Positions 315 through 62,657 of a DNA stretch of 64,000 bases are shown here, piece by piece. Position 1 is the first letter of the stretch. Every line of letters begins with the position of its first letter. A program made the position numbers and the translations under genes. Under the pieces are notes generated by a model. That model made no database searches, was not told the DNA's origin, and saw nothing but the letters and a program-made list of their open reading frames with translations. Location: sequence record NC_070957.1; one strand, 5' to 3'.

Positions 315-345
315 AAGCTCTGGGGTCTTCGGATCCCAGAGCTTT
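315..345 (+). terminator. Rho-independent terminator
   Basis: aagctctggggtc-ttcg-gatcccagagctt hairpin just after a stop codon. Confidence 0.8.
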
Positions 346-358
346 AAGTCCCATATCT

Positions 359-382
359 TTTTAATTAGATATCATTAACGTG
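359..382 (+). promoter_or_regulatory. Putative early (virion-RNAP) promoter
   Basis: ttttaattagatatcattaacgtg matches the recurrent TTTCA-N3-NGATATTATTANNGTG motif. Confidence 0.55.
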
Positions 383-421
383 TAGCAATCAGCTATTACA
401 TTTAACTAAAGGAAAGAGACC

Positions 422-1162
422 ATGAAAAAGATTATTATCGCCACACTGTTCTTCGTCCCGTTCTTCGGTAATGCAGCTTCCTTTGACTGTCGCAAAGCGA
501 CCACTGTCATCGAGAAAACAATCTGCGAGGACGAAGTTGTCAGCAAGCTGGATGAAGAAGTCGCAAAAGTTTACAAGGCAGTTCGTCAGGCTAATCCTGG
601 TGATCAAGACATCATCAACCAACAACGTGACTGGATCAAGTCCCGCAACAAAGCCACCAGTGTTGTGGAGCTGGAAGAGAAACACAGGGACCGCCTGGAC
701 GTTCTCAAGATCATGCTGAAAGCCTCCAACGAACCCCAGGCTATGAAGCGTGACAACGCCGGTCCTGTTGCTATGAAGCGTGGCGATGCTCCTGTGAAAA
801 CTCAGGAACAGAAAACCAAGCCGGTTAAGAAAGGCACCATTGCCGAATTGGATGACATGGCCAAGCAGGTTAGTGAGACTGGCTACTATGTTGACCCTAA
901 AGGTATGAAGTTCGATGGTCGCACTCTGGGTGCAGACATCAATGGTTTCCCTGGCTGGTGTGCTCAGCGTGTTAACCACGTCACCGACACCCTGGTTCTG
1001 CAAATGGTGAAGACCGATGAAGAACGCGCGGCATTCGTCAAACACAGTTCCATGTTCCGCATCGTAATGGGTAATATGATGTTGGAGAGTGCCAAGATGA
1101 CTACCGAGAAAATGGGTGTTCCTTTTGATGCCAACAATTTCTGTTTCAATCTGGACGTATAA
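422..1162 (+). CDS. Secreted protein with N-terminal LprI (lysozyme inhibitor, DUF1311-type) domain
   Basis: Signal peptide MKKIIIATLFFVPFFGNA, then ASFDCRKATTVIEKTIC...LDEEVAKVYK...INQQRDWIKSRN, the characteristic LprI signature; AAGGA RBS. Confidence 0.8.
   Translation: MKKIIIATLFFVPFFGNAASFDCRKATTVIEKTICEDEVVSKLDEEVAKVYKAVRQANPGDQDIINQQRDWIKSRNKATSVVELEEKHRDRLDVLKIMLKASNEPQAMKRDNAGPVAMKRGDAPVKTQEQKTKPVKKGTIAELDDMAKQVSETGYYVDPKGMKFDGRTLGADINGFPGWCAQRVNHVTDTLVLQMVKTDEERAAFVKHSSMFRIVMGNMMLESAKMTTEKMGVPFDANNFCFNLDV
740..796 (+). repeat. Imperfect 30-nt in-frame tandem duplication (AMKRDNAGPV / AMKRGDAPV)
   Basis: gctatgaagcgtg is identical at 740-752 and 770-782. Confidence 0.8.
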
Positions 1163-1171
1163 GGAAAGATC

Positions 1172-1561
1172 ATGAAAAAGATTATTCTTGCGTTGTTCTT
1201 TACTTCTTTCTTCGCTGTGGCTGATACCGGTGTCAGTAAGGAAGAGGTTGAAGAGCTGATCGAAGTTGCTTCCGGTCACGTAACCGAAATCGATATCAAC
1301 GGTTTCGCCGTCTCCGGGACTTCTATCAATACCACATCCAACAAAGAGTTGCGTAACTGTGCCCAAGCTTTGGGTTCGCAGTTGATCGCCGACGTCTACC
1401 TCAAGCCAGCCCACGAGTATGGGCTTTACGCGGAACTGACCAACGTCCGTGATGGAGCCAACACCGTTGGTGCAAATATGGTGATCAATCAGCTCCTGGG
1501 GATCTCTGGGTCTGATGAAGTCGCTCTCACTATCTGCAACAAACTTCGGAGCAACATGTAA
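1172..1561 (+). CDS. Secreted hypothetical protein
   Basis: Signal peptide MKKIILALFFTSFFAVA; RBS; 129 aa. Confidence 0.8.
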   Translation: MKKIILALFFTSFFAVADTGVSKEEVEELIEVASGHVTEIDINGFAVSGTSINTTSNKELRNCAQALGSQLIADVYLKPAHEYGLYAELTNVRDGANTVGANMVINQLLGISGSDEVALTICNKLRSNM

Positions 1562-2040
1562 TGTTCAAATATCTGTTTGGTAAAATGCGTCTGGTTGACG
1601 ATCAGGGCGAATCCATGAAGGACGATGTCTTGATGGTCACCAGACGTTGTGACTCCTTCCAACATCGCGACATGGCACAGAGTGGTAAACTCATTCCTTT
1701 CGCCGGTGGGTTCTGCGGTAGCGGCCTGAACCCCGACAACTACTTCCCTGGTCAGTTCAACGGCGAGTCCATCTCTTGCCGGGTCAAGACTGATTCCTTT
1801 ACGGCTGAAGAAGTCAAGAGTGAACTGGAAGAGCACGACATTTATATGTCCGGACTCTCCCCGTGGGAAACCCATAGTAAGAAGGCCAAACTCTATCTGA
1901 CGGCCATCTTTGTTCCGAAGGGAACCCGGCCCGATAAACCCAGGAATCCGGAGATCAAAGGACCTGACTGGGTTCTGAAAACTCCGGAAGAGTTCTGTTC
2001 AGAAATGAAAGAAGTCTTCGACGATCCGTATTACTTCTAA
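1561..2040 (+). CDS. Hypothetical protein
   Basis: TAATG stop/start coupling with the upstream gene; 159 aa. Confidence 0.75.
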   Translation: MFKYLFGKMRLVDDQGESMKDDVLMVTRRCDSFQHRDMAQSGKLIPFAGGFCGSGLNPDNYFPGQFNGESISCRVKTDSFTAEEVKSELEEHDIYMSGLSPWETHSKKAKLYLTAIFVPKGTRPDKPRNPEIKGPDWVLKTPEEFCSEMKEVFDDPYYF

Positions 2041-2049
2041 GGAGCAACC

Positions 2050-2271
2050 ATGCCCATTGTGGAAATCTTTCTTGGTTTGTTGGCTTTACTGTACCTGTTT
2101 ATAGGTTGGGAGATTTTCGCACCTATGGGTTGGTACTTCGGTGAGTCGTTCAAACGGACCTGGTATAACAACGTGTTATACTTTATCGCATTCCCCACTG
2201 CTGTTGTGATGTGGTTGCCGATTCTCGCAGTCATTGTCATTGGTGGGGTGACGTTTAACCGCAAACCGTAA
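2050..2271 (+). CDS. Small membrane protein (2 TM)
   Basis: GGAG RBS; two hydrophobic segments; followed by a terminator. Confidence 0.75.
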   Translation: MPIVEIFLGLLALLYLFIGWEIFAPMGWYFGESFKRTWYNNVLYFIAFPTAVVMWLPILAVIVIGGVTFNRKP

Positions 2272-2275
2272 ATAA

Positions 2276-2307
2276 AGCTAGAGCTACCCGCTTGGGTAGC
2301 TCTAGCT
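2276..2307. terminator. Bidirectional terminator between convergent genes
   Basis: agctagagctaccc-gctt-gggtagctctagct perfect 14-bp stem. Confidence 0.85.
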
Positions 2308-3676: not shown

Positions 3677-3689
3677 GATCTCCATATCT

Positions 3690-3713
3690 TTTCAAGTAGA
3701 TATTATCTAAGTG
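3690..3713 (+). promoter_or_regulatory. Putative early promoter
   Basis: tttcaagtagatattatctaagtg motif match. Confidence 0.6.
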
Positions 3714-3745
3714 CATTCATAATCAAAATTGCTAAGGAGCAATAA

Positions 3746-4219
3746 ATGAATCTCTTAAATAAAGCACTCGTCAAAATGTTCATGTTGGCAGGTTGCCGGA
3801 GTCGAATCTGTGGGAGGGATCGTCAAGTCTTCATTCTGAAGAAATGTGTGGTGAAGATACCGGTGATGTCCAATGGCTGGTTTGAATTCGTCCGTGGTTA
3901 TTATTCCAATCTCAAAGAGATGGATAGCATCCGAGGTTACGAAGGTAATTTCCAGGAACATCTTCCAGAAATACTGGGGAGTTATTTATTTGGGTTAGTC
4001 GTCGTTTACAAGAAATATCGTGAGATTATGGATGGTAAAGATGACAACGAAACCGGCGACTTTGCCGAGTACACTAGGTTCCTAGGTAAACTTGATGACA
4101 TCCGGAGAAATGAGAAAAACTCAGAAAAATATATCTGGACTCAAGACACCAAGATCTTTAACTTCGGCTGGGATAAATATGGCCGGGTGGTAGTCATCGA
4201 TCTGGGGACACCTTACTAA
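3746..4219 (+). CDS. Miniature protein-kinase-like fold protein (paralog 1)
   Basis: GRDRQVF (G-loop), VVKIP (Lys), NLKEM (alphaC Glu), DTKIFN (catalytic loop), VIDLG (DFG-like). Confidence 0.7.
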   Translation: MNLLNKALVKMFMLAGCRSRICGRDRQVFILKKCVVKIPVMSNGWFEFVRGYYSNLKEMDSIRGYEGNFQEHLPEILGSYLFGLVVVYKKYREIMDGKDDNETGDFAEYTRFLGKLDDIRRNEKNSEKYIWTQDTKIFNFGWDKYGRVVVIDLGTPY

Positions 4220-8095: not shown

Positions 8096-8404
8096 ATGCA
8101 ATTTGTATTAGGTCATTTAGTGCTTAATGGCTCTGTGTTAGTAGGTTACTATCTGATCTTTGTTTTGATCAGTCAAGTATTCAGGGACGATTATCGTCGT
8201 TACCAAGTCAGAAGGATATGCAGGATAATTCTGCTATCTTATTTCTCTTGGTATACCTGGGGCTTAGAAAGTCTGGCAATCGCTAATGATGCACTCGTGC
8301 ATGTTAGAATGACTGCCCTCATTATCGCCATCTGTGCTTTACAAAATGCAGTTGGTTGTTTAATCGCTAAAGAAGAAAGGAAAGCTAGTTATGATTACCG
8401 CTGA
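8096..8404 (+). CDS. Membrane protein (about 3 TM)
   Basis: Hydrophobic segments; AGGG RBS. Confidence 0.7.
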   Translation: MQFVLGHLVLNGSVLVGYYLIFVLISQVFRDDYRRYQVRRICRIILLSYFSWYTWGLESLAIANDALVHVRMTALIIAICALQNAVGCLIAKEERKASYDYR

Positions 8405-8672
8405 ATTGATCCTCGGAATCTTGTTTGTTTACATCACCTCTATGTTTGGTTCCATGTTGATTAAGCCAGGAGCTGACGGTAAAGTGATCCGTAGTACTAT
8501 CACTGTCATCGCCTTCATCATCCTGGGGATCCTAATCTGTTCTGTTAACCATCGGAACAGTTGGCTATATCTTGCGTTTACGAGATCAGTTGGCGGGATA
8601 CTGTTAGCTCTCGCAGCAGCTCACGTTGTAATGATCGTAGATATTCACCGCAAAACCAATCATAAGAAATAA
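8391..8672 (+). CDS. Membrane protein (about 3 TM)
   Basis: Hydrophobic segments; AGGA RBS. Confidence 0.7.
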   Translation: MITAELILGILFVYITSMFGSMLIKPGADGKVIRSTITVIAFIILGILICSVNHRNSWLYLAFTRSVGGILLALAAAHVVMIVDIHRKTNHKK

Positions 8673-11512: not shown

Positions 11513-11525
11513 TTTGTCTATAGTT

Positions 11526-11549
11526 TTTGAAGCAGATATTATTAGGGTG
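11526..11549 (+). promoter_or_regulatory. Putative early promoter
   Basis: tttgaagcagatattattagggtg motif match. Confidence 0.6.
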
Positions 11550-15006: not shown

Positions 15007-15030
15007 TTTCAGACCGATATTACTATAGTG
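15007..15030 (+). promoter_or_regulatory. Putative early promoter
   Basis: tttcagaccgatattactatagtg (contains TATTAC). Confidence 0.65.
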
Positions 15031-16564: not shown

Positions 16565-16585
16565 AACTTTCTATGTCCTATTTAT

Positions 16586-16609
16586 TTATAGATCGATATT
16601 ATTACAGTG
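16586..16609 (+). promoter_or_regulatory. Putative early promoter
   Basis: ttatagatcgatattattacagtg motif match. Confidence 0.6.
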
Positions 16610-36451: not shown

Positions 36452-39400
36452 TTAACCTAATCCAACAGTGTTCGGTCGACCACCTTTACCTTGGCTGGCC
36501 ATCAGGTCATTCAACCTACCAAGCTGACTGATGATCCCACTCAACAATTGCTGAGCTCCTTCATCACTGACTGCTTGTGTTCCCGTGCCAGTCTGTTTGG
36601 GAGCTGGTTTGGGAGCCGGACCAACACTAGAAACAGTGGTAGGGCCTGCCGGTTGACTTACTGGTGCCGGAGCACTCGGTTTGGGAGTCGGAGCCTGAAC
36701 TGGTGCCGGACTCGGAACTGGGTTAGTAACAGCGGCGGTTGGTGCCGCACTAGGAGATACCGGCGGAGACGCTGTCGCAGCTTTCTGTTGATTAACGCTG
36801 CTCTTATCCAAGAGCTCATCGACTTCCTGCTTATGAGTCTTCTTGGTAGATGCGACTTTCTCTTCAGCGGCCTTGGGGACATTCTGATCGGCAGCGTTAG
36901 GAACATCCGCTATCTTATCTTCACCGCCAGAGGTTGGTGCAAAGTCGGAGGTCTTTGTCGGACCCGCTGCTTTGATTTGACCGTTCTGGAGTTTAGCAAG
37001 ATATTCGGTATATGCCTTACGACGTTCGTCAGTAAAGGGAACAGAGTTACCACCGTTGATGCCACGAACAGCACTATCGAAGTCACCAGTCGTCGCAATG
37101 GACTTGATCGCTTTATTACCCAGAAGGTAACGAACAGCGGAGTCTGCTACAACGTTAGGATCTTCGGATACCAGTCGTGGGTTACTTACGACGTCTATCC
37201 CTGTCTCACGCTTGTACTTTTCGTAGTTGGCTTTACCAGTGAGCTGGAACAAACCACGACCACGATACAACCAACCATCCTCAGGCTTCTCGTTACCGAG
37301 TGTGGGACCTTTGGGTGCTCTACCATACACATACATCGCACGTTGTTCTGGTGGCATTGCTGCTACCTTTTCCGCTGTAGCCATGTCTGGTATGTTCCTG
37401 AAATACTTCTTCAGGGTTGGTGCAGACCAGTTGGTGTTTTCTACCGTGGACTTGTAGTTACCCGTTTCAACCTTGGCAAGTGCCAGAGCGAGAGCAATCT
37501 GCTTGTTGTCTGTGATACCAGCACGGAGCAGACCTTGAAGGAGGAGTTGTTCACCCTGTTCCGGAGTCATGGAGAGACCTTGGTCATCACCTGCCTTCAG
37601 AGTGGGATCCATTTCCCAGCCTTCACTGAACCCACCACTATACTGACCACCGCTACCAGCACCTACTGTCCCTGGGGTAGTTCCCATTCCACCAGGAGGG
37701 AAGGCATTAGCAAAGCCATTGCTTGCGTAGTTGTTTCCACCGAAAGTCCCACCTTGCTTACCGGCTTGTTCCCTGCGTTTCATACGCATGGCAGTCAGTT
37801 CTGCAATACGGGCCTGTTCAGCTTGTTTCCTGGCTTCGGACTTATCTTGGAGTTGTTCACCGATTGCTTTAGAAGCAGCCTCCTCCATTACCGGGTCGCG
37901 CAACGCTGCTTTCATTGCATCGCTGTTAAGCGACTTAATGTAAGTATCAGCCCTATCGCTGTCGGTACCGGATTGAGCACCTTCGAACGGACTCGCTTTC
38001 ACGTTCCAGACAGAAGTCTCTTCACCATCGACCATTACCATGATCTCTGACAGCACTTTAGCTATTTCGGCTTTGTTGCTATTAGAGAGCTGACGCCAAC
38101 CTTGTTTCGGAGATGACCCACGTTGTTTGTAAACCAGTGCGTAATACTTCTGGAGTACAGGGAGGAAACGTGATTCGAACCAAGCCTTCCAGTTCGCCAT
38201 CATCAGTTCTGTTTTGATCCTGAACATCGGCTTGAAGAGAGCCAGTACAGACTCCAGTGGGATTTCGAGTTTCCCCAGCCCATTGGAAAGAACCATGTTC
38301 TCTTCGCAATAACGTTCAAGTTTCAGAACTGCATCTACACGCCAGTTGATATTGGCATCGTTACCGTACACGGCAAGACGAGCAAGCGTGAATGGTTCGA
38401 TTTCTGTGTCTCCATCTTTGTGGAGGTCAGATATGTCGATGTCCTTAATTTCCGCTGTGACAGCGAAGGTTTTGTCGATGTGTTCTTGTGATCTGATTAA
38501 CGACTCGTTGCCGAACTTATTCTGGAACCAAGCGACAACCTTATTGTCCGATACTTCCGGATTCAGGTTGGCTTGACGTTGCTCATCATAAGTCCTCAGC
38601 TTGAGACCGTCTGCCTTCTTCTCGGCTGGATAAGCTTTACGAAGTTCATTCATCAAATCAGCGACTTCGCCAGTAGTAGCAATTCTTGACATCGTCCCAG
38701 TATCTTGGTCAATCGGGACGTCGATAGTGTAAGGATTGGTCGACATGTGGCCAACGGCTTCCTGTACACGCTCTGCGACAAGAACTACTTCATGGGTCTG
38801 ACCGGCATCGTACTCTTGAAGATCGCCAAACCTTGCAGCGTTAGCCGCGGCAACGAAAGTCAAGAAGATGGGTTTGAACCGCGCTTGGAACCAAGTGTTG
38901 ATATTATCACGTGGAACCGGAGCCGAGTTCTCAACGAACTGTCTGAAGACTTCAGCGACCGCCTCAGGTTTACTGAAACCTGCTGACCCACTACCCACAT
39001 TAACATGCGGGAGCAACATCATCTCGAGACGTTGTACACGTTCTGCTAAATCACTCCGCCATTCACGAATGCCGTACATCGCGAAACGAAGACGTTTCTG
39101 AATGGAGTTGGCCAGCAGAGTTGTCCGGTAAGTGGTGCCGTTGTACTTGTACCCTTCCGAGTTAGCCATATGCTGTTCGGCGTCACGACGGTCTGTGAAG
39201 AACTGTCCATCATCGGTCCAGTACACACCAGTGTTCTTGATACCGTCAATCCAACTCTTGGGCATTACTGCTTCAAGAACCGTGGTCCCGATACCGATCT
39301 GAGGAATCCAGTTTGCAGCATCCTCTATCTGATCAGCAGTGGTCACTGGACGTTTCTGGTTGAACATGTTCTCTTCAGTAGGTGTGGAAGAACTGTCGTC

Positions 39401-42400
39401 ACCTGTCAACAGGTTGTATGCTAGAGCACTACCACCAAGGAGTGCGCCGAAACGACCCATCCCTTTATTGAGTTTACCCCCTCGCCCACCAGGACCACCC
39501 ATACCAAACAGTCCAGCGATACCACTACCGGCCATCTTGGCGATGGGACCTAACAGACCACCCAACATCTTTATACCTCCGCTAAGAAGTTTAAAGATGG
39601 GAGAACCGATACCCAACACACCAGAGAACAACGCACTTCCAATTGTCCCTAAACGTTTCACACTGGCAGCCATGGAACCGCCAACCATCCCGAGTAATGA
39701 ACCCAGTGGGTTCTTGAAGAATCCGCCGATGGAACCCATCATGTCGTAGAGCTTGCCAAAGAGACCAGGTTTCTTACCTTTCTCTTCACCTTCCCCTTTC
39801 TTCTTACTCTTACCGGTGAGTGTATCACCAATATCGATGATTGCTTTCTGGACTCGATCAGATTGCGATGCTGCGGCCTGACGCGCTTTATCCTCAAGGG
39901 AGTTCTTACGCATCGCCGGACCACCAGCGTCATCAAGTTCTTCGTCCTCAATCTCCATGCCAAACTTTTGGGAAAGGAGTTTGTAGATACGATCAAGACG
40001 ACGCTCAACCCCGTTCATGTTGGTACCGCGACCACGAACCGCAGAGACATGTGAGCTGGCTTGCTCGTTAGAACGCTCGAAACCAAGTTTACCCATCATG
40101 TTGGTAAAGAGTTGTTTACCCATACCGACAGCAGCACCAGCCATGTTAGAACCCATGGTTCCCACTTGTCTGATACGTTGACCTGTACGAGTTACCAAAC
40201 CTTCATCAAACTCGGCTTGGGAGATAAGTTCGTTACCTTCTTCATCGTAAACTGGACCAGAGATTTCGTTCCAACCCTTGACAGGTTTGAAAGTTCCGTT
40301 CTCATCTTTCCAGTACTCAACGTTCTTAAACCCTACTGCGCGGAGACGAGGGTTTTGGAGATCACCTTTCACAAAGACGTCTTGTTGATAGATGATTTCT
40401 TTACCCATGTCGATACCGGCGCGGAGCTTACCGATTGGGTTCACAAAGTTGTAGGCATTGACAATCATCCCCTTAGCGGTTTCGATCCCACGAAGCACTA
40501 CAGCGCGACCATCAGGACCGAAGATGCGACCACCCAGTTCACGAACTGTGATGATTGCTTTGGATACCACGTCAATGACAGGACCTTTAATTTCACGGTA
40601 CGTGTTAATAACACGCTTAGTGATCGCGTCAATGTACTCACCAGCTTTGAGCTTTGCTGACTTCAGAATGCTTTCACCGTTTTCATCTACGATGTCTTCA
40701 TCATCAGAAGGTTCGTTCGCACTGACTTTTTCTTTACGGTCCTTGTTACCCCAGTACTGAACGAGACCGCCCAGAGCCAGACCACCCACCGCCATAGATG
40801 CAGCGGCAATAGGGTTAGATGCAAAGTTGGAGGCAATGCCACCAAGTACGCCACCCAACACTATCGGAGAGTTCTTGACCAGTAAGTCCATACCGCGACC
40901 GAACATACCTTCCGGGAACAGACCTTTGATCTTACTCATCAGACCTTCTTTAGCTTGCTCTTCTTGGCGTTCCTCATTGGCGTTCTTTGGAGCACCTGAG
41001 AACAACTTGCCTTTATTAGCAAGATCCAGAAGTGAAGAAAGGATTGTTTCCATCCGCTGATTACTTTCTGCAATCTTGGATGTGTTGGAAACGATCTCTC
41101 CGGTCTGAGTGTCCATGTATGCCGTATCCGGCTTACCGGACTTGGAAGACATGTTGCTGCTAGCCAACACGTCCAGTTTCTCTGTCAGTGTGTTGAGAGA
41201 ACTGGAGAGACCAGCGAAGGAGGCACCTTCAGTACGCTTTCCATCATTGGTCGGAGCGGGGCGATCAGGAATGTGGAAACTGTTCCTGGTTTTCTTACCT
41301 TGAGTTTTGTCGCTGGGATTCATCCCTCTGAGCGCTGGGTTGTTAGGATCGTCCATGAACATGCCGATACGTTCGTGGAATACTTCCATATCAACCTTGT
41401 CGATACCGTTCTCTGTATAGATCACACCAAGGTCACGAAGCAACTGTTCATTACCAGTGGCCCTGAGCATGTCGATACGTTCAGCGATATTCGGAGCGAG
41501 GTCTTTCAGGTTGGTTGCAGCGGACCCTGCTTTATTGAGACGCTCTTGATACCTGGAGTTCCGCATCTCTGTCATCACTTGCATACGCTCGAAACCTGTG
41601 GTCTCGTTGAAGCGAGCAATGTCTTGATCACGCAACCCAAAGTGACGACGTACCACCGCATGGATCTCGTCGAGCATCGGGCCAGAGATACCAGGAATGT
41701 CCCCGATATAGTAGAACGGGTTAAAGTTCTTCTCTCGGTCAACGTCTCTTGCGATTACCTTAGCAAATGCTTTACGGGCTCCCTGGGACAACGTCTTCTT
41801 GGGATCCAGGTCATCAACGAACTCAAGAGCAGCAGTCGCATACCGATCGAATTCAGCGGCGGGCATCAGGTCGGCTTGAACAGCGATCTGTTTGTTGGTT
41901 TCGTTCTGGAACTGACCACGCATGTAGTTGTAAGTAACCAACTCGGCATTACTGTCACCAGTTCTGATCATCTCCAACAGTTGGTTGGTACGAGAAATCA
42001 AACCAGGTATTACTTCATTCAGTGTGACGTTGTTACCCTGAGTCCAGATACCAGCATCGACCAAATCACGTGGGTTACGTTTCTTGAGAGTGTACTGGGT
42101 ACCTTTAGCCTGGTTCATCTCAGACATAAACGAGTTCATTGCGGCTTTAGCGCGGTTACTCGCGGCGTTCTGAATTGTCCACCTGGCTTTACTCATGGGT
42201 TGTTTGTCGGGAGGAAGACTGGCAACGTAGTCTTCGTAATCAATGAACGGCATCTCGTCCATTGCTTGGTAGTCTTCAGCCATGAAGTTGATCAGGCCAA
42301 CTCCGGCGTTAGACATGTACGAAGCTTTCGAACCTGTGTTGGAGAGTCGCCCCCATTGACGTCGCAATGCCTTTGCTTCAGCTGGGTTTTTCTTGGCAAG

Positions 42401-43513
42401 GCTTTCCAACATTCTTTTACCAGGACCTCGGGCAAAGAAGTTGGGAAGGTTACGGACAGCAGCGCCTGCTAAACCTCGACCAGCCATGTCTCCTAACATC
42501 CCAGCAGATACTGGCATACCGTCAGACATCTCGAGCATGTCGGCGACCATTCCCAACACACTACTGGCGCTATCTGAAGCATCTTGCCTGGCTTCTTTAC
42601 CAAAACGATCCCTGATGAGACCAGTCAGGCCGCCAACACGACGCCCTACTGTACTAAACAGGGAATCCCGCATGTACTGTTTGGAAGCGGTGAAGTTCGA
42701 TGTCTTTTGGTAATCAGACATCATCGTCCCTTTCAGGATCTTCTTCAGTTCAGCAACCTGGGCGTGCATGCCCTTTTCCATGAACTTGTAGTACTTGACG
42801 TTAGCCACATAGCCTTTCGCCATCAAGTTCAATTTGGTCTGTTCGATTTTGAACTGTACGTTGCGCTGGTAATCGTTAAGATCACGAACACTGGTTTCGA
42901 TATTGACAAGTTGGCGGTTACCGGCCATGACGGCAGAACTGATTTGACCGCCAACGTTTGCAGACATTACGTTGAGGGAGTTCGTCATTTCTGAGAACAA
43001 CCCTTCTTGACGACTCATAACGCTGTCGAGTACCAAAGTCAAGTCATAATCAGACTCTTCTTCAATACCCTCCATGCTATTATAAGACCCATCACTCTTC
43101 TCCCAGTCAGAGAAATCTTTCTGGGAAAAGTCATCCATTTTGTTACGAAGGCCGCCAGGTAACTTCTCACCGAAACGGTTGGAAAGCTGGCCGGCAATGC
43201 TTTGTAATGATCTGACCGATTCGTAGTTTTGCTCTTTGAGCTCTGTCTTGAGTTCATCGTAGCGTTCGATGGCACGGTTGGTTCGGTCGAAAGCGTTACT
43301 GAAAGTGTTGGGCAAAATAGTGCGGAGTGATCTAGTGATCGCTGCACCTGACCCTACTGTTTCATTAACGAGTCCACCCAAGAACCCCGACGCCATACTT
43401 GACACGAATCCTTTACCTTTGAAAGGATCGATATCAAAATCTCCATCGAGATCGAAATCACCCGCAAACGGGTCATCCCAATCATCGAGACCGAGATCAT
43501 CTTCATATGACAT
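36452..43513 (-). CDS. Large tail protein (phiKZ gp181-like) with C-terminal GH19 lysozyme domain and Pro-rich tail
   Basis: 2353 aa; VETGNY...DGWLYRGRGLFQLTGKANY...SAVRY...INGG is the GH19 signature; divergent from vRNAP beta'. Confidence 0.85.
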   Translation of the reverse strand: MSYEDDLGLDDWDDPFAGDFDLDGDFDIDPFKGKGFVSSMASGFLGGLVNETVGSGAAITRSLRTILPNTFSNAFDRTNRAIERYDELKTELKEQNYESVRSLQSIAGQLSNRFGEKLPGGLRNKMDDFSQKDFSDWEKSDGSYNSMEGIEEESDYDLTLVLDSVMSRQEGLFSEMTNSLNVMSANVGGQISSAVMAGNRQLVNIETSVRDLNDYQRNVQFKIEQTKLNLMAKGYVANVKYYKFMEKGMHAQVAELKKILKGTMMSDYQKTSNFTASKQYMRDSLFSTVGRRVGGLTGLIRDRFGKEARQDASDSASSVLGMVADMLEMSDGMPVSAGMLGDMAGRGLAGAAVRNLPNFFARGPGKRMLESLAKKNPAEAKALRRQWGRLSNTGSKASYMSNAGVGLINFMAEDYQAMDEMPFIDYEDYVASLPPDKQPMSKARWTIQNAASNRAKAAMNSFMSEMNQAKGTQYTLKKRNPRDLVDAGIWTQGNNVTLNEVIPGLISRTNQLLEMIRTGDSNAELVTYNYMRGQFQNETNKQIAVQADLMPAAEFDRYATAALEFVDDLDPKKTLSQGARKAFAKVIARDVDREKNFNPFYYIGDIPGISGPMLDEIHAVVRRHFGLRDQDIARFNETTGFERMQVMTEMRNSRYQERLNKAGSAATNLKDLAPNIAERIDMLRATGNEQLLRDLGVIYTENGIDKVDMEVFHERIGMFMDDPNNPALRGMNPSDKTQGKKTRNSFHIPDRPAPTNDGKRTEGASFAGLSSSLNTLTEKLDVLASSNMSSKSGKPDTAYMDTQTGEIVSNTSKIAESNQRMETILSSLLDLANKGKLFSGAPKNANEERQEEQAKEGLMSKIKGLFPEGMFGRGMDLLVKNSPIVLGGVLGGIASNFASNPIAAASMAVGGLALGGLVQYWGNKDRKEKVSANEPSDDEDIVDENGESILKSAKLKAGEYIDAITKRVINTYREIKGPVIDVVSKAIITVRELGGRIFGPDGRAVVLRGIETAKGMIVNAYNFVNPIGKLRAGIDMGKEIIYQQDVFVKGDLQNPRLRAVGFKNVEYWKDENGTFKPVKGWNEISGPVYDEEGNELISQAEFDEGLVTRTGQRIRQVGTMGSNMAGAAVGMGKQLFTNMMGKLGFERSNEQASSHVSAVRGRGTNMNGVERRLDRIYKLLSQKFGMEIEDEELDDAGGPAMRKNSLEDKARQAAASQSDRVQKAIIDIGDTLTGKSKKKGEGEEKGKKPGLFGKLYDMMGSIGGFFKNPLGSLLGMVGGSMAASVKRLGTIGSALFSGVLGIGSPIFKLLSGGIKMLGGLLGPIAKMAGSGIAGLFGMGGPGGRGGKLNKGMGRFGALLGGSALAYNLLTGDDSSSTPTEENMFNQKRPVTTADQIEDAANWIPQIGIGTTVLEAVMPKSWIDGIKNTGVYWTDDGQFFTDRRDAEQHMANSEGYKYNGTTYRTTLLANSIQKRLRFAMYGIREWRSDLAERVQRLEMMLLPHVNVGSGSAGFSKPEAVAEVFRQFVENSAPVPRDNINTWFQARFKPIFLTFVAAANAARFGDLQEYDAGQTHEVVLVAERVQEAVGHMSTNPYTIDVPIDQDTGTMSRIATTGEVADLMNELRKAYPAEKKADGLKLRTYDEQRQANLNPEVSDNKVVAWFQNKFGNESLIRSQEHIDKTFAVTAEIKDIDISDLHKDGDTEIEPFTLARLAVYGNDANINWRVDAVLKLERYCEENMVLSNGLGKLEIPLESVLALFKPMFRIKTELMMANWKAWFESRFLPVLQKYYALVYKQRGSSPKQGWRQLSNSNKAEIAKVLSEIMVMVDGEETSVWNVKASPFEGAQSGTDSDRADTYIKSLNSDAMKAALRDPVMEEAASKAIGEQLQDKSEARKQAEQARIAELTAMRMKRREQAGKQGGTFGGNNYASNGFANAFPPGGMGTTPGTVGAGSGGQYSGGFSEGWEMDPTLKAGDDQGLSMTPEQGEQLLLQGLLRAGITDNKQIALALALAKVETGNYKSTVENTNWSAPTLKKYFRNIPDMATAEKVAAMPPEQRAMYVYGRAPKGPTLGNEKPEDGWLYRGRGLFQLTGKANYEKYKRETGIDVVSNPRLVSEDPNVVADSAVRYLLGNKAIKSIATTGDFDSAVRGINGGNSVPFTDERRKAYTEYLAKLQNGQIKAAGPTKTSDFAPTSGGEDKIADVPNAADQNVPKAAEEKVASTKKTHKQEVDELLDKSSVNQQKAATASPPVSPSAAPTAAVTNPVPSPAPVQAPTPKPSAPAPVSQPAGPTTVSSVGPAPKPAPKQTGTGTQAVSDEGAQQLLSGIISQLGRLNDLMASQGKGGRPNTVGLG

Positions 43514-48100: not shown

Positions 48101-49520
48101 AAGCGTGGAAGAGGTTAACCTTGTTCACCAGGTTAAGCAGCAAGAAGAAGTGACATTCGGTGGTTCTTTTGGTCGTACCGATCAAGCAATGGTTCGTCGT
48201 ACTCGTGGTCAACTGGATAACTATGCTGGCATCATCTCTGAGGCTGGTAAGGACTCCGGTAAGGTAGGGTTTATTTCCTACATGACGTCCGATGCAAAGA
48301 TCGTCGATCTTGCTGGTAACATCGATGTTGACCTTCCTGGTACTCCTGCTGGTCGTGGTTCTATTACCGCCAACCTGCTTTACGGCACCACTCGAGACGA
48401 TACCAAGCGTTCTCTCTTTGCTGGTGTACAGCTGAGTCAGTGGATGGCTACTGATAGTTACGGTCCCGTTCCGCTCCAAACGTCCTATGACACCCAAATC
48501 GCTTATCGTACTAGCGAACTCTACTCTTCTGTTGCCAAAGATGACGGTGAAGTCATCGAAGTAACTAAAGAGGGGATGGTGGTCAAGTACAAGAACGGAA
48601 ACACCGATCGGTTCTTCTTGGGATATGAGATTGGCAAGGGTGCTGGTGAAAACCACAAACACCTGAAGATCACCGACATGAAAGTTGGTGACAAGTTCAC
48701 CAAGGGTAAAGTCGTTGCTTGGGACAGTATGTTCCTGGCTCGCGATATTCGTGACCCCAACCGCGTTTGTACCAAGCTCGGGACAATGACACGGATGGCG
48801 CTCGGTGAAGGTCAATTCACCTTCGAAGACTCGATAGCGATCAGTAAGAACTATGCGCTGAAGAGTACCACTCCTTACGTTAAGGAGAACCACTTCGTTG
48901 TGAACTATACCGATGTCATCACCATGCATGTTAAGGTGGGTGACAAGGTTGAGTACGCACAGCCTTTGGCAGATCTGCAAGACCCGACATCCGCAACCTT
49001 TAATGATGATAGCATCATGAACGGATTGGATCGTCTGGGGATCAAACAGATCAAGGCTAAACAGGCTGGGGTAATCACCAAGGTCGAAGTCGTCTACAAT
49101 GGTGACATTGAGGATGCTGATCCGTCAGTTAAGAAGTTCATCCAGCAACAAGACTCTGTCCGCGGTAAAATGGCCAAGTACCGCAACAACACGGCTACCG
49201 ATGGTAACGTTGGTGGGAACACCTCTGTAGGTAAGAGCAAGGTATACCCTGGTACTGCCTCTGTCTCCATTTACATTGAGAACAGTCTCACTACCACCGT
49301 CGCGGATAAGTTCGTTGCAGGTAACCAAATGAAGGGTACTGTCGGGTTCATCTACCCCAACCCCATCTACACTGAAGATGGTCGAGAGGTTGATTGGTTC
49401 TTCTCCTTGAAGTCCCTTCTGAACCGCATGGTGCTCAGTCTCCGTGATAAGCTTGTTGCTAACGAAGTCAATAACGTTTACACGATTCGCATGATCGAGA
49501 AATATCCGAGGTATGAATGA
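45162..49520 (+). CDS. Virion RNA polymerase beta subunit, N-terminal part (phiKZ gp178-like)
   Basis: 1452 aa; GIISEAGKDSGKVG, R..FAGVQLSQ, FEDSIAIS, ADKF..GNQMKGTVG. Confidence 0.9.
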   Translation: MTETQLALLGLAGNEAIEYNQFVKLFATRERASDVVNPRYQSIGDVMLPRSSVFHYQPKGLKEMGPSNTAPFISNYDRQINMFFNPNYVHDRGAIKMVPLQMSKLEKSYLAGHYNYRRTRQISAVASKPGELLIDNMAPGRLPVVYRRITIQTGFDQAYNELATLMANVGQFSSYNLNQFAEFPLPRAFPSYKLLEFKFEKYMKHFFKRSKDGESLVMEGWDKETLKEFQAESSFWLLDLYGMIMGHGYEQYSLFNRLNEKARSQFNMIFTYNGRCWIVNLQTLINLIGYDDKPSDKKPSAIKIAYFKRFYLSLISLVTPITQETPEVSNDEHVVEEDAESEPASVGDQGKNTNVDNRSGGGSLDDLYKKPVDAKSVGKGQPGDVEPTPVGSQDGGNNKESEGAGSNSDGAGDATDGTEWGTDIPDEVFERATVEQAEVVAADSSYGPTVTADRILQRLARQGQLTTKELKYYTDISRSYKDIEFGGRTLEEIVDIKYSDLELKPEKIGTDSVLVADKSVQQSRTQQFVNGYTKEYLERDIINMILGVQNGGTALVDFDRETTITAESKYDVYKLRLQPVEGGALTTRPFRIPKVDDDGTLFMGGVKIYCQNLRVDIPVRKISPTKVSLSSYYDKKIMIERSPYKVNDFAAWLKAAILNKSRVNKSLVVTLGGQKADQKEVCWYYSVLASRFKEIQFGNYHFKFDTKSLIGDNKAWGELCNAETWVIGVEGDKPVLIDSSGLISVEGEERGYIEEILGLEIFKAPIPNCTVNINGFMFPIIAVLSYWVGFSEVMKRLKPVYRSIEPGVRPQLSADEYMVQLADERLVFNRRDEFATLIFSGLENMPGTKNFARSQLDDPNVWFSIISNDKVKPSHFSEMGLIYDMFIDPITARELERRKYPLVMDQLLMAAAKLLLSNEASHEVEITEQRFVGTERIPGHVYREFVKSTRQMRNKPGKKKTFDLNPETIMMNILTDSSFQSVEEVNLVHQVKQQEEVTFGGSFGRTDQAMVRRTRGQLDNYAGIISEAGKDSGKVGFISYMTSDAKIVDLAGNIDVDLPGTPAGRGSITANLLYGTTRDDTKRSLFAGVQLSQWMATDSYGPVPLQTSYDTQIAYRTSELYSSVAKDDGEVIEVTKEGMVVKYKNGNTDRFFLGYEIGKGAGENHKHLKITDMKVGDKFTKGKVVAWDSMFLARDIRDPNRVCTKLGTMTRMALGEGQFTFEDSIAISKNYALKSTTPYVKENHFVVNYTDVITMHVKVGDKVEYAQPLADLQDPTSATFNDDSIMNGLDRLGIKQIKAKQAGVITKVEVVYNGDIEDADPSVKKFIQQQDSVRGKMAKYRNNTATDGNVGGNTSVGKSKVYPGTASVSIYIENSLTTTVADKFVAGNQMKGTVGFIYPNPIYTEDGREVDWFFSLKSLLNRMVLSLRDKLVANEVNNVYTIRMIEKYPRYE

Positions 49521-50389
49521 ACAACAACCGTGAAGTCTTTGGACTGAAAAGTATCCAAAGCTTGATGCGGGAAGTTGGTCTTTATGGAGGGCGCATCGAC
49601 GCCCTCTTTGGACCGTCCTGTGTCAACGCAATGAAAGCCCTGGTGGCTAATGCAAATCCGTCCTACAACCCGATTGTAGCCGTTCCTACTTATGACGCTA
49701 CCGATGTATTCAAGTGGGTACAGGAATACCTTGTGCGCGCTGGCAAGACCCCTAACGGGTTTGCCGTAGATGGTAAGTGGGGTAGTGGTACCGAAGGTGA
49801 ACTCGGTAAACTCTGTAACATGTACGCTGAAGCGCATTCGCTTCCTTTCTATAGCTACGCTTGGACCGCTCACCCCAGGATCACTCCTGAGATGGTCGCG
49901 AAGGTAGAAGCATGGATGGTGAAGTGGGGTAAGCCCAAAGAACACGTCAACTATTTGTTCAGTTGTATGGCACTGGAAACAGGTCGTACTTTTGACGCTT
50001 CTATCAAGAACAAGCATTCCGGTGCTGTTGGACTGATCCAGTTTATGCCCGGTCCTAATGGTTCCGCTGTTGATCTCGGAACCACCACCGATGCCTTGGC
50101 GAAGATGACCGAGGTTGACCAGCTGGACTATGTCTTCAAATACTTTGAAAAGTACGGGTACATCAAGAAGTGTGCTCGACTGGAAGACTACTACCTCACC
50201 ATTTTCTATCCTGCCCATGTCGGTAAAGACCCCAACATCAAAGTTGGCGTGGAAGGAACCAAACTCTATAGTCAGAACTCTGGTTTTGACCGTGAGAAGA
50301 AAGGGTTCTACACCGTCGGTGATATCGCTTTCGCGATTACCGAATTCTACTGGGAAGGTATGGATCCGAAGAAACGTACCATTAAGTAA
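49517..50389 (+). CDS. Modular endolysin (EL188-like): two peptidoglycan-binding repeats plus lytic transglycosylase-type domain
   Basis: GRIDALFG and VDGKWGSGT repeats; CMALETGRTF, GLIQFM, QLDYVFKYF, LEDYYLTIFYP; same position after vRNAP beta as EL188. Confidence 0.88.
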   Translation: MNNNREVFGLKSIQSLMREVGLYGGRIDALFGPSCVNAMKALVANANPSYNPIVAVPTYDATDVFKWVQEYLVRAGKTPNGFAVDGKWGSGTEGELGKLCNMYAEAHSLPFYSYAWTAHPRITPEMVAKVEAWMVKWGKPKEHVNYLFSCMALETGRTFDASIKNKHSGAVGLIQFMPGPNGSAVDLGTTTDALAKMTEVDQLDYVFKYFEKYGYIKKCARLEDYYLTIFYPAHVGKDPNIKVGVEGTKLYSQNSGFDREKKGFYTVGDIAFAITEFYWEGMDPKKRTIK

Positions 50390-54406: not shown

Positions 54407-54430
54407 TTTCGGATATACATTATTAACATG
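54407..54430 (+). promoter_or_regulatory. Putative early promoter
   Basis: tttcggatatacattattaacatg motif match. Confidence 0.55.
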
Positions 54431-54499
54431 AGCATAGAGCATTGAACAACCGCGGACCACTTCCGGTAAAACTCTTGTCTCTTTTAAGGGAGAAACAAT

Positions 54500-56691: not shown

Positions 56692-56723
56692 ATAAACCTT
56701 TATTATTTCTTTGCTCTATATCT

Positions 56724-56747
56724 TTTCAAATCGATATTATTAAGGTG
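56724..56747 (+). promoter_or_regulatory. Putative early promoter
   Basis: tttcaaatcgatattattaaggtg, the closest match to consensus. Confidence 0.65.
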
Positions 56748-59687: not shown

Positions 59688-59711
59688 TTTCACACCTATA
59701 TTACTTAGGTG
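59688..59711 (+). promoter_or_regulatory. Putative early promoter
   Basis: tttcacacctatattacttaggtg (contains TATTAC). Confidence 0.6.
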
Positions 59712-62560: not shown

Positions 62561-62633
62561 TATATGTGTGTCATTTAATACAGAGGTCGTAACTATTCGT
62601 TATAGAGCGTTACAGAGCTCTAGATGCATAATT

Positions 62634-62657
62634 TTTCAGCTATACATTATTATAGTG
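62634..62657 (+). promoter_or_regulatory. Putative early promoter
   Basis: tttcagctatacattattatagtg motif match. Confidence 0.6.

Follow-up and report, generated by a model that had tools for sequence, protein, structure and literature searches.

A phage protein family with an LprI/DUF1311-type domain and a C-terminal domain without a known structural relative: D3_0184 of Aeromonas phage D3

D3_0184 is a constrained gene at the head of a four-gene unit

We analyzed a stretch of 64,000 nucleotides (nt) from sequence record NC_070957.1, referred to below as the window, and in particular the open reading frame (ORF) at positions 422-1162 on the plus strand. An earlier reading made from the sequence alone (the sequence-only reading) had proposed that this ORF is a phage-encoded gene for a periplasmic lysozyme inhibitor of the LprI type. 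The first 3 kb of the window are 100% identical to positions 186001-189000 of Aeromonas phage D3, which is recorded as a 262-kb Ludhianavirus (MN102098.2), and are 95-98% identical to phages D6, LAh10, and D9. The ORF is annotated there as coding sequence (CDS) D3_0184, which encodes 246 amino acids (aa) and carries the database label "hypothetical protein"; the phage origin claimed for it thus stands. In LAh10, the ortholog already bears the label "protein of unknown function DUF1311." Since phage D3 encodes split multisubunit RNA-polymerase subunits, it can be placed by its gene content among the phiKZ-type jumbo phages, a group with a virion RNA polymerase for early genes.

D3_0184 is the first gene of a four-gene unit (D3_0184 to D3_0187) that lies behind a phage promoter-type motif and has a hairpin at its end. 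Between D3 and LAh10, 17 of the 738 positions of the D3_0184 coding region differ, and the 110-nt upstream region is identical. From these few substitutions, a ratio of nonsynonymous to synonymous substitution rates (dN/dS) of 0.11 was obtained, and a homolog is kept at the same position in L009, a metagenomic contig from a distant relative; D3_0184 is therefore a real gene under purifying selection. Searches of NCBIfam and PADLOC gave no match for any of the genes 0184 to 0187, and the small phage genes neighbouring D3_0184 contained no hydrolase or type VI domains. The coding region is divided as follows.

422..475, plus strand: predicted Sec signal peptide, aa 1-18, MKKIIIATLFFVPFFGNA, followed by ASFDC (from the translation)
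476..733, plus strand: LprI/DUF1311-like four-helix N-terminal domain (N-domain), aa 19-104 (Pfam, AlphaFold2, and fold comparison)
734..832, plus strand: linker predicted to be disordered, aa 105-137, with two AMKR units at aa 107-110 and 117-120 (AlphaFold2 and sequence)
833..1159, plus strand: C-terminal domain (C-domain), aa 138-246, modelled as a helix, a beta-hairpin, and four helices (AlphaFold2 and alignment)

An LprI/DUF1311-type domain follows a predicted signal peptide

The signal peptide was called by the classical n/h/c-region rules. The segment MKKIIIATLFFVPFFGNA has an n-region with KK, a 12-residue hydrophobic core, and small residues at -3 and -1 ahead of ASFDC, which agrees with the Sec signal proposed by the sequence-only reading. 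The string AASFDC, immediately after the hydrophobic core, is invariant across the phage family described below. Because the Sec signal appears cleavable and there is no lipobox, D3_0184 is predicted to be a soluble periplasmic protein.

The LprI assignment had been based on the signature ASFDC..A....EKTIC...LDEE....Y...QQRDWIK.RN, and a profile search against the Pfam LprI family (PF07007) had been named as the way to check it. The signature is present, and PF07007 matched aa 23-83 (profile positions 1-76) with 24.6 bits and an E value of 3.5e-5, above the curated gathering cut-off of 22 bits. A six-frame scan of the whole phage record with the same profile (26.2 bits) identified D3_0184 as its sole copy. 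Using phmmer, we retrieved 4593 representative proteins at an E value of 1e-3 or below, nearly all of which aligned to aa 1-100 only; 32 of 35 sampled matches contained PF07007. A word-index protein search returned 4 matches only, and a sequence search of the Protein Data Bank (PDB) yielded spurious matches only.

The AlphaFold2 model, built on an alignment of 26 sequences, contains two well-folded domains, with predicted local distance difference test (pLDDT) values of 87-95 for the N-domain and 73-92 for the C-domain, separated by a disordered linker. In VIA comparisons, the modelled N-domain aligned with 6ar7_A (Z 11.3, 76 aa, root mean square deviation [rmsd] 2.6) and with the DUF1311 structure 3gi7_B (Z 8.3, 65 aa, rmsd 1.8). 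Foldseek also placed 6ar7 at the top, with a probability of 0.99 yet an E value of only 0.8. Middling Z scores are easily reached by helical bundles, and the fold evidence is supportive only together with the sequence match. The LprI/DUF1311-type domain in D3_0184 is genuine.

The invariant N-domain columns of the family alignment are A18-C23, E31, I34, C35, D44, Y51, Q68, W71, and R75. The phage domain is a two-cysteine variant in which C23 and C35 are kept and NKATSVxEL replaces the second cysteine pair across the phage family. That second pair is retained in 112 of 153 fetched LprI-domain proteins (about three quarters) and is absent from the phage family. Since other accepted members also lack it, its absence does not exclude PF07007 membership and, judged from the alignments, marks a sub-class within the family.

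The C-terminal domain is a confident model without a solved relative

A C-terminal domain of no known family with two cysteines had been described in the sequence-only reading. Both cysteines are there (C180 and C241), and together with N218 they are invariant in the C-domain across the phage family. When the domain was modelled alone with AlphaFold2 and the family alignment, a pLDDT of 88.4 and a predicted template modelling score (pTM) of 0.79 were obtained. A comparison with 48,161 representative chains by VIA-align gave a best Z of 4.3 and none of 5 or above, and Foldseek against the PDB found nothing below an E value of 0.4. Among the viral models of BFVD there was nothing at an E value of 0.001 or below; the matches were weak, and at most one came from the domain's own family. 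The second of them is a DUF1311 protein of Aeromonas phage 60AhydR15PP (E 0.29), whose record holds a D3_0184 relative according to tblastn. The ESM Atlas returned nothing usable for the C-domain. As modelled, the C-domain is thus a confident structure without a solved structural relative and the most original feature of the locus. D3_0184 has one cysteine pair per domain (C23/C35 and C180/C241), which fits an oxidising compartment as far as sequence can tell.

The two domains are joined by a linker whose pLDDT falls below 50 at aa 115-137. The 10-aa duplication noticed earlier is made up of PQAMKRDNAG and PVAMKRGDAP; in the DNA, 13 nt are repeated exactly, at 740-752 and 770-782 (period 30). 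Linkers of distant family members (P0007, P0012, P0023, P0008, and P0014) also contain an AMKR or [AP]MxR-like motif. This motif may serve as a processing or docking site.

A two-domain family in unrelated phage groups

D3_0184 matched phrog_4675, a family annotated as being of unknown function, over its full length (E 1e-44, 154 bits, aa 1-230, profile positions 1-223 of 235). Relatives were detected by tblastn in 156 phage records. Full-length relatives with 30-37% identity occur in the T4-like Aeromonas phages AS-zj, CC2, Aes012, phage 25, 65.2, and avDM6; others belong to an SSU5-like group (SSU5, a 110-kb Salmonella contig, and many IMG/VR contigs), and further ones were found on metagenomic contigs. 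A scan of viral contigs with the single protein D3_0184 found nothing; with the family alignment it recovered 77 loci. One member labelled "Aeromonas salmonicida" is on short contigs among T4-like phage genes. The two-domain family has so far been seen only in phages and phage-like contigs, bacterial genomes not having been scanned with the C-domain.

The signal peptide and the LprI module are shared more widely than the C-domain. RB49-like coliphages and Klebsiella Marfaviruses have both in common with D3_0184. In RB49ORF260c (L004 4001-4759) they are followed by a different, beta-rich C-terminal part, and the C terminus of the Marfavirus protein (Klebsiella phage P545, L012 3001-3753) matched the C-domain profile at a borderline level only (E 0.0024). 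The LprI module thus seems, by sequence comparison, to be a carrier for exchangeable periplasmic domains. The C-terminal parts of the RB49-like and Marfavirus proteins each contain a cysteine pair again. The annotation of Aeromonas phage 65 divides the gene into two ORFs, 65p072 and 65p073 (91 and 117 aa), and phage 65.2 has one protein of 220 aa; the two-ORF form may result from a frameshift or sequencing error, or the N- and C-terminal parts may truly be separate there.

The domain call itself was already known: besides the DUF1311 label of the LAh10 ortholog, RB49ORF260c was recorded as a weak DUF1311 match in 2006 (PMC1524935), and the UniRef name of phage homologs is "LprI-like N-terminal domain-containing." A literature search found no paper treating any phage member functionally. 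New in this work are (i) a two-domain family, delimited here, that extends across unrelated phage groups and has been seen in phages only, (ii) a C-domain that is confidently modelled and has no known fold, and (iii) a secreted stand-alone paralog, a precise natural deletion, and a caution on the family name.

A natural deletion and a stand-alone paralog of the C-domain

The gene has been removed in nature with little else, and the gene that follows it is a probable paralog of its C-domain.

409..1160, plus strand: 752-nt segment, essentially all of gene 184, absent from phage D9 and from contigs of two studies (annotation and junction alignment)
1172..1561, plus strand: D3_0185, 129 aa, with a predicted signal peptide of its own (MKKIILALFFTSFFAVA, followed by D) and a C-domain-like part (profile searches)

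The deletion is flanked by the direct repeats AAGGAA(AG)AGAyCATGAAAAAGATTATT. Phage D9, about 98% identical to D3 here, matches D3 beyond the promoter motif as far as AACTAAAGGAA, where its sequence passes into the ribosome-binding site and start of 0185, which thereby comes to lie directly behind the promoter motif (D9 junction at L099 811-920). In a comparison of public assemblies with the window, the joint 408->1161, with 9 shared letters, was found in contigs of two runs from two studies, and the full form of the 0184 region in contigs of two other runs. As the deletion is present in D9 and in contigs from two studies, it is not the artefact of a single assembly. D3_0184 is dispensable, because D9 and a second-study contig lack exactly this gene; a phage without it is viable. 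The same holds for T4 sp and other exclusion genes, which are not essential either.

Several lines of evidence relate D3_0185 to the C-domain. A C-domain profile built without D3_0185 matches aa 44-122 of it (E 6.8e-6), an hhalign comparison of D3_0185 with the C-domain gives a probability of 77% (E 2e-5, 86 columns), and the C-terminal part of phrog_4675 matches it with an E value of 1.5e-3. The invariant Cys, Asn, and Cys columns of the C-domain are kept. D3_0185 is thus probably a stand-alone secreted paralog of the D3_0184 C-domain, and its dN/dS of 0.04 (D3 versus LAh10, with few substitutions) indicates purifying selection. Genes 0184 and 0185 are near-identical in DNA over their ribosome-binding sites and first five codons, and their domains share only about 15% identity.

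Three arrangements were observed: 184 and 185 together in D3, D6, and LAh10, 185 only in D9, and 184 only in L009. In L009, the 0184 homolog (49% identity in the N-terminal part) occupies the same syntenic position and, with no 0185, is followed directly by homologs of 0186 and 0187. Each of the three arrangements retains at least one secreted copy of the C-domain, and the LprI module has been lost in D9; the pattern rests on three lineages and is anecdotal. Because all lineages examined keep a secreted C-domain and the LprI module can be lost, the pattern suggests that the C-domain, rather than the LprI module, may carry the indispensable part of the unit's role.

The unit is completed by two further genes, both with homologs in L009.

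1561..2040, plus strand: D3_0186, 159 aa, without signal peptide or family match (library searches)
2050..2271, plus strand: D3_0187, 73 aa, with two hydrophobic segments; closes the unit (hydropathy)

The D3_0186 homolog in L009 comes directly after the LprI gene, and a 68-aa homolog of D3_0187 is found at the same place (8300-8506). In size and topology, D3_0187 is reminiscent of small immunity or holin-like membrane proteins.

A recurrent AT-rich motif precedes the unit

The transcription and translation signals around the unit are listed below, together with the further sites of the motif.

315..345, plus strand: terminator-like hairpin, AAGCTCTGGG ... CCCAGAGCTT followed by TT, which closes the upstream gene D3_0183 (sequence)
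353..382, plus strand: AT-rich phage promoter-type motif ATATCTTTTTAATTAGATATCATTAACGTG, core at 369-382 (recurrence in the window)
408..418, plus strand: ribosome-binding region AAAGGAAAGAG, which doubles as the left edge of the natural deletion's direct repeat (sequence and D9 junction)
2276..2307, no strand assigned: hairpin with a 14-bp stem between the converging genes 0187 and 0188 (terminator scan)
353-382, 3684-3720, 11520-11549, 15010-15030, and 16580-16609, plus strand: motif sites (intergenic alignment)
54415-54445, 56718-56747, 59695-59711, and 62630-62657, plus strand: motif sites (intergenic alignment)
Ahead of the genes at 3746, 11570, 15080, 16678, 54500, 56802, and 62692, plus strand: extended form of the motif (intergenic alignment)

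The motif core occupies 369-382, 40 nt ahead of the ATG at 422 and just after the terminator-like hairpin. The latter is identical in phage LAh10; because of its short T run, it was not listed by the consensus terminator scan. With at most 1 mismatch, the core ATAYTAYTANNGTG occurs 8 times in the window, always on the plus strand, where 0.49 copies are expected and none of 100 shuffles gave more than 3. Seven of the 8 copies are intergenic and 34-100 nt ahead of plus-strand start codons. The claim that D3_0184 is the first gene behind a promoter motif 40 nt upstream is borne out by these counts. An alignment by eye of the window's intergenic regions gave the extended form TATnTTTT-n6-GATATTATTAnnGTG, the AT-rich core being also written ATATCATTA. 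An exact k-mer search of the upstream region, which found AGCTATTACAT three times only, was unconvincing and was discarded. We also rejected a host-type (sigma-70) promoter ahead of D3_0184, since a sigma-70 promoter scan upstream of 422 found no consensus site and the motif is phage specific.

Jumbo phages with multisubunit RNA polymerases have a conserved AT-rich motif of about 10 nt, centred near -10, ahead of early operons, and this motif is an early promoter wherever transcripts were profiled (PMC7598289). TATnTTTT-n6-GATATTATTAnnGTG is probably an early promoter of D3, and because it fits that description (PMC7598289), early expression of D3_0184 is a reasonable inference from sequence. 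The hairpin at 2276-2307 probably ends the transcription unit.

Wall-degrading enzymes of the phage and the relation to T4 Spackle

The sequence-only reading had pointed to a GH19 tail lysin and an endolysin of kin or competing phages as possible targets of D3_0184, and the assignments of the two enzymes encoded in the window were confirmed.

36452-43513, minus strand: D3_0233, 2352-aa protein annotated as 'putative endolysin', with a glycoside hydrolase family 19 (GH19) domain at about aa 1987-2157 (Pfam and structure match)
49517-50389: D3_0236, endolysin with a lytic-transglycosylase-like catalytic domain and a weak PG_binding_1 match (profile and structure match)

The GH19 domain matched its Pfam profile with 25.7 bits and a GH19-type endolysin structure with an E value of 1.8e-18. 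By its size and its position next to RNA polymerase genes, the 2352-aa protein resembles a phiKZ gp181-type lysin carried in the virion or tail.

The same reading had proposed a superinfection exclusion system analogous to T4 Spackle (gp61.3) but built on a different fold. The gene for Spackle is early and non-essential, and its Cys-containing product blocks the tail lysozyme gp5. As regards the fold, hhalign of T4 Spackle against the family gave a probability of 4.6% with only 13 signal-peptide residues aligned, and the Spackle structure was not in the fold-match lists for the D3_0184 domains. As regards the role, the proposal is a reasonable analogy only. Homologs of sp were found in 904 phage records, from enterobacterial phages, with Aeromonas not among the ten commonest names. 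A complementary distribution of Spackle and the LprI family was considered and rejected, since Marfaviruses contain genes of both kinds.

In Aes012 (L011 3001-3687) and Klebsiella phage P545 (L012 3001-3753), the LprI-family gene is found in the stretch bounded by primase gene 61 and dCTPase gene 56, no more than about 2 kb away from T4's sp site (the 41-61 interval) and in the hyperplastic neighbourhood that contains sp in T4. By analogy, this location might be taken as a mild positional hint toward a Spackle-like role.

Proposed function of D3_0184 and its alternatives

In our proposal, D3_0184 serves its phiKZ-type jumbo phage as an accessory protein that is not essential; it would be made early, be exported to the periplasm, and bind a periplasmic partner protein soon after infection. 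The most likely class of partner would be peptidoglycan-cleaving enzymes of external origin, namely, tail lysins of superinfecting phages or type VI muramidases. By binding them, D3_0184 would preserve the wall of the infected cell and so lead to exclusion or to protection from lysis-from-without. The C-domain would probably bear the specificity, and the LprI module may act as an accessory binding or scaffold module. By analogy, we consider it possible, although we hold the view tentatively, that D3_0184 is such a periplasmic binder of incoming wall-degrading enzymes, and inhibition of a lysozyme by it is plausible.

Indirect support for antagonism to wall hydrolases may be drawn, again by analogy, from type VI secretion. 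DUF1311/LprI proteins are signal-peptide-bearing partners of wall-targeting type VI effectors (PMC9796082, PMC8867033, and PMC12135965), and the effectors encoded beside LprI-domain proteins are lysozyme-like, LysM/transglycosylase, or pesticin-like (PMC9796082, PMC8867033, PMC12135965, and a 2026 preprint). Etsi4 of enterohemorrhagic Escherichia coli (EHEC) relieves the toxicity that Etse4 exerts in the periplasm (PMC12981562), and in Pantoea a pesticin-like effector and an LprI-domain protein form an effector-immunity pair (2026 preprint); Psi15, from a 2026 preprint, is another such DUF1311 immunity partner. Etsi4 is EDL933_RS01130 on the EDL933 chromosome; it adjoins Hcp and scores below the PF07007 cut-off. 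A wider form of the proposal would make the whole phage-only family a set of periplasmic shield proteins that protect the infected or lysogenic cell against incoming muralytic weapons. Such proteins would have spread between unrelated phages of Aeromonas and enterobacteria (jumbo phages, T4-like phages, and SSU5-like phage-plasmids) and would be functional analogues of Spackle or orphan phage-borne type VI immunity proteins, of different folds, with the C-domain recognising the target. We regard this wider form as doubtful.

A number of points weigh against these proposals. (i) The premise of the sequence-only reading, namely, that LprI/DUF1311 domains bind and inhibit lysozymes, is weak. LprI of Mycobacterium tuberculosis contains an MliC domain besides its LprI domain, MliC being an established lysozyme-binding fold, and Salmonella ScwA, a soluble, periplasmic, disulfide-dependent protein, has an LprI domain without MliC; an scwA deletion mutant is as susceptible to lysozyme as the wild type, and the Pfam LprI name is without experimental support according to the ScwA authors (PMC7933661). 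The literature thus lacks a demonstration that the LprI domain itself inhibits lysozyme, the mycobacterial protein having MliC. In D3_0184, PF09864 (MliC) gave no match even at an E value of 1 or below, the C-domain is predicted to be mainly helical, and a Pfam scan found no MliC, PliC, Ivy, or PliG-type domain. (ii) Because bacterial LprI modules are fused to many unrelated C termini (ankyrin repeats, CHAT, and propellers), most of them without a Pfam family, the module predicts little about the target. (iii) A BLASTP comparison of Etsi4, the DUF1311 immunity protein that has experimental support, with D3_0184 gave an E value of 1.4, that is, no pairwise similarity, and since Etsi4 has no similarity to D3_0184, function could be transferred from the DUF1311 immunity proteins at the superfamily level only. 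(iv) In Klebsiella Marfaviruses, an LprI-family gene occurs alongside a gene annotated as spackle, which shows that the LprI family does not simply replace Spackle. (v) The early timing is read from the promoter motif alone. (vi) Tail lysins differ among the phages that carry the family (GH19 in D3 and another type in T4-like phages), which would speak against a phage lysin as a target common to all of them, unless the divergent C-domain adapts to each.

The observations on the C-domain could also be taken in another direction, namely, that it acts on a non-muralytic target, such as receptor masking, a DNA-entry step, or an envelope machine, possibly together with 0187, and that the LprI module provides scaffolding or oligomerisation. 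A secreted C-domain in each lineage, set beside the loss of the LprI module in D9, speaks for such a role, as do the confident model of a domain that has no known fold and is seen only in phages and phage-like contigs and the joining of LprI modules to many unrelated bacterial C termini. The conserved protein 0187 with its two transmembrane segments, at the end of the unit, adds a resemblance to the T4 pair Imm and Sp. That resemblance, however, is based for Imm on size and topology alone, and the strong conservation of the LprI module in the phage family shows that it is no neutral spacer. We consider this alternative a possibility that carries somewhat more doubt than the binding of incoming enzymes. 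Modulation of the host's own lytic transglycosylases or endopeptidases, in level or stability, which would tune the envelope for growth or release, is unlikely. It draws on the finding that ScwA controls murein hydrolase levels and causes lysis on overproduction (PMC7933661), and D3_0184 is likewise Cys-containing and predicted to be periplasmic; but the LprI domain of ScwA is C-terminal, and no similarity was seen beyond the domain.

The transglycosylase-type endolysin of the phage and the predicted periplasmic location could also be brought together in a role in lysis timing, in which D3_0184 would inhibit its own phage's endolysin (49517-50389) or the periplasmic domain of a holin in the manner of an antiholin, and the LprI-domain gene of RB49 does lie about 3 kb from holin gene t. 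The early-type promoter, the distance from the lysis genes of D3, the dispensability of the gene, and the absence of homology to known antiholins in any library searched make this quite improbable. A shield against animal lysozyme of the c or g type, as reported for mycobacterial LprI, is the least probable of the explanations considered and very unlikely in absolute terms. Aeromonas lives in fish and other animals, which was counted in its favour with nothing further than the Pfam family name; no MliC, PliC, Ivy, or PliG-type domain is present, and the deletion of scwA was without effect on lysozyme susceptibility. Moreover, lysozyme from outside seldom enters the periplasm of intact Gram-negative cells in the time that a lytic cycle takes.

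The periplasmic proteins of virulent phages have been little studied, the classics being T4 Spackle, Imm, and RI. The family described here is small, soluble by prediction, and widespread in Aeromonas phages considered for aquaculture phage therapy, and the existence of the natural deletion variant D9 beside its kin D3, D6, and LAh10 makes it easy to test. Should D3_0184 be an exclusion or anti-type-VI factor, this would bear on the design of phage cocktails, in which kin phages may exclude each other, and the LprI/DUF1311 module and the new C-domain fold would gain a function. Should it not be one, a misleading family name would be corrected, since the label "lysozyme inhibitor LprI" propagates to phage proteins without evidence.

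Comparison with known systems

The PF07007 members of known structure, 3gi7 (PP0307) and 6ar7, share with the modelled N-domain of D3_0184 the helical fold, the position right after the signal peptide, and the motif FDC...IC...LD...Y...Q..W..R. Canonical members have four cysteines in two pairs, whereas D3_0184 has the first pair only and adds a phage-specific C-domain. M. tuberculosis LprI (Rv1541c) has an LprI-type N-terminal domain and is located outside the cytoplasmic membrane, as predicted for D3_0184; in contrast to D3_0184, which has neither a lipobox nor an MliC match, it is a lysozyme-inhibiting lipoprotein with MliC. Salmonella ScwA is closer in that it combines an LprI domain with the absence of MliC and is a soluble periplasmic protein, a state predicted for D3_0184, but its LprI domain is C-terminal, the rest of the protein is unrelated to D3_0184, and it regulates host hydrolase levels.

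The DUF1311 type VI immunity proteins, represented by Etsi4, the predicted Psi15, and SED_RS06230 of Salmonella Dublin, consist of a signal peptide and a DUF1311-type domain, like the N-terminal part of D3_0184, and are regarded as periplasmic antagonists of wall-degrading enzymes. These proteins are single-domain, about 110-150 aa long, and encoded beside their effector, whereas D3_0184 has two domains and no effector neighbour. T4 Spackle differs from D3_0184 in size and architecture and bears no sequence relation to it, but both are secreted periplasmic proteins (by prediction in the case of D3_0184) of virulent phages.

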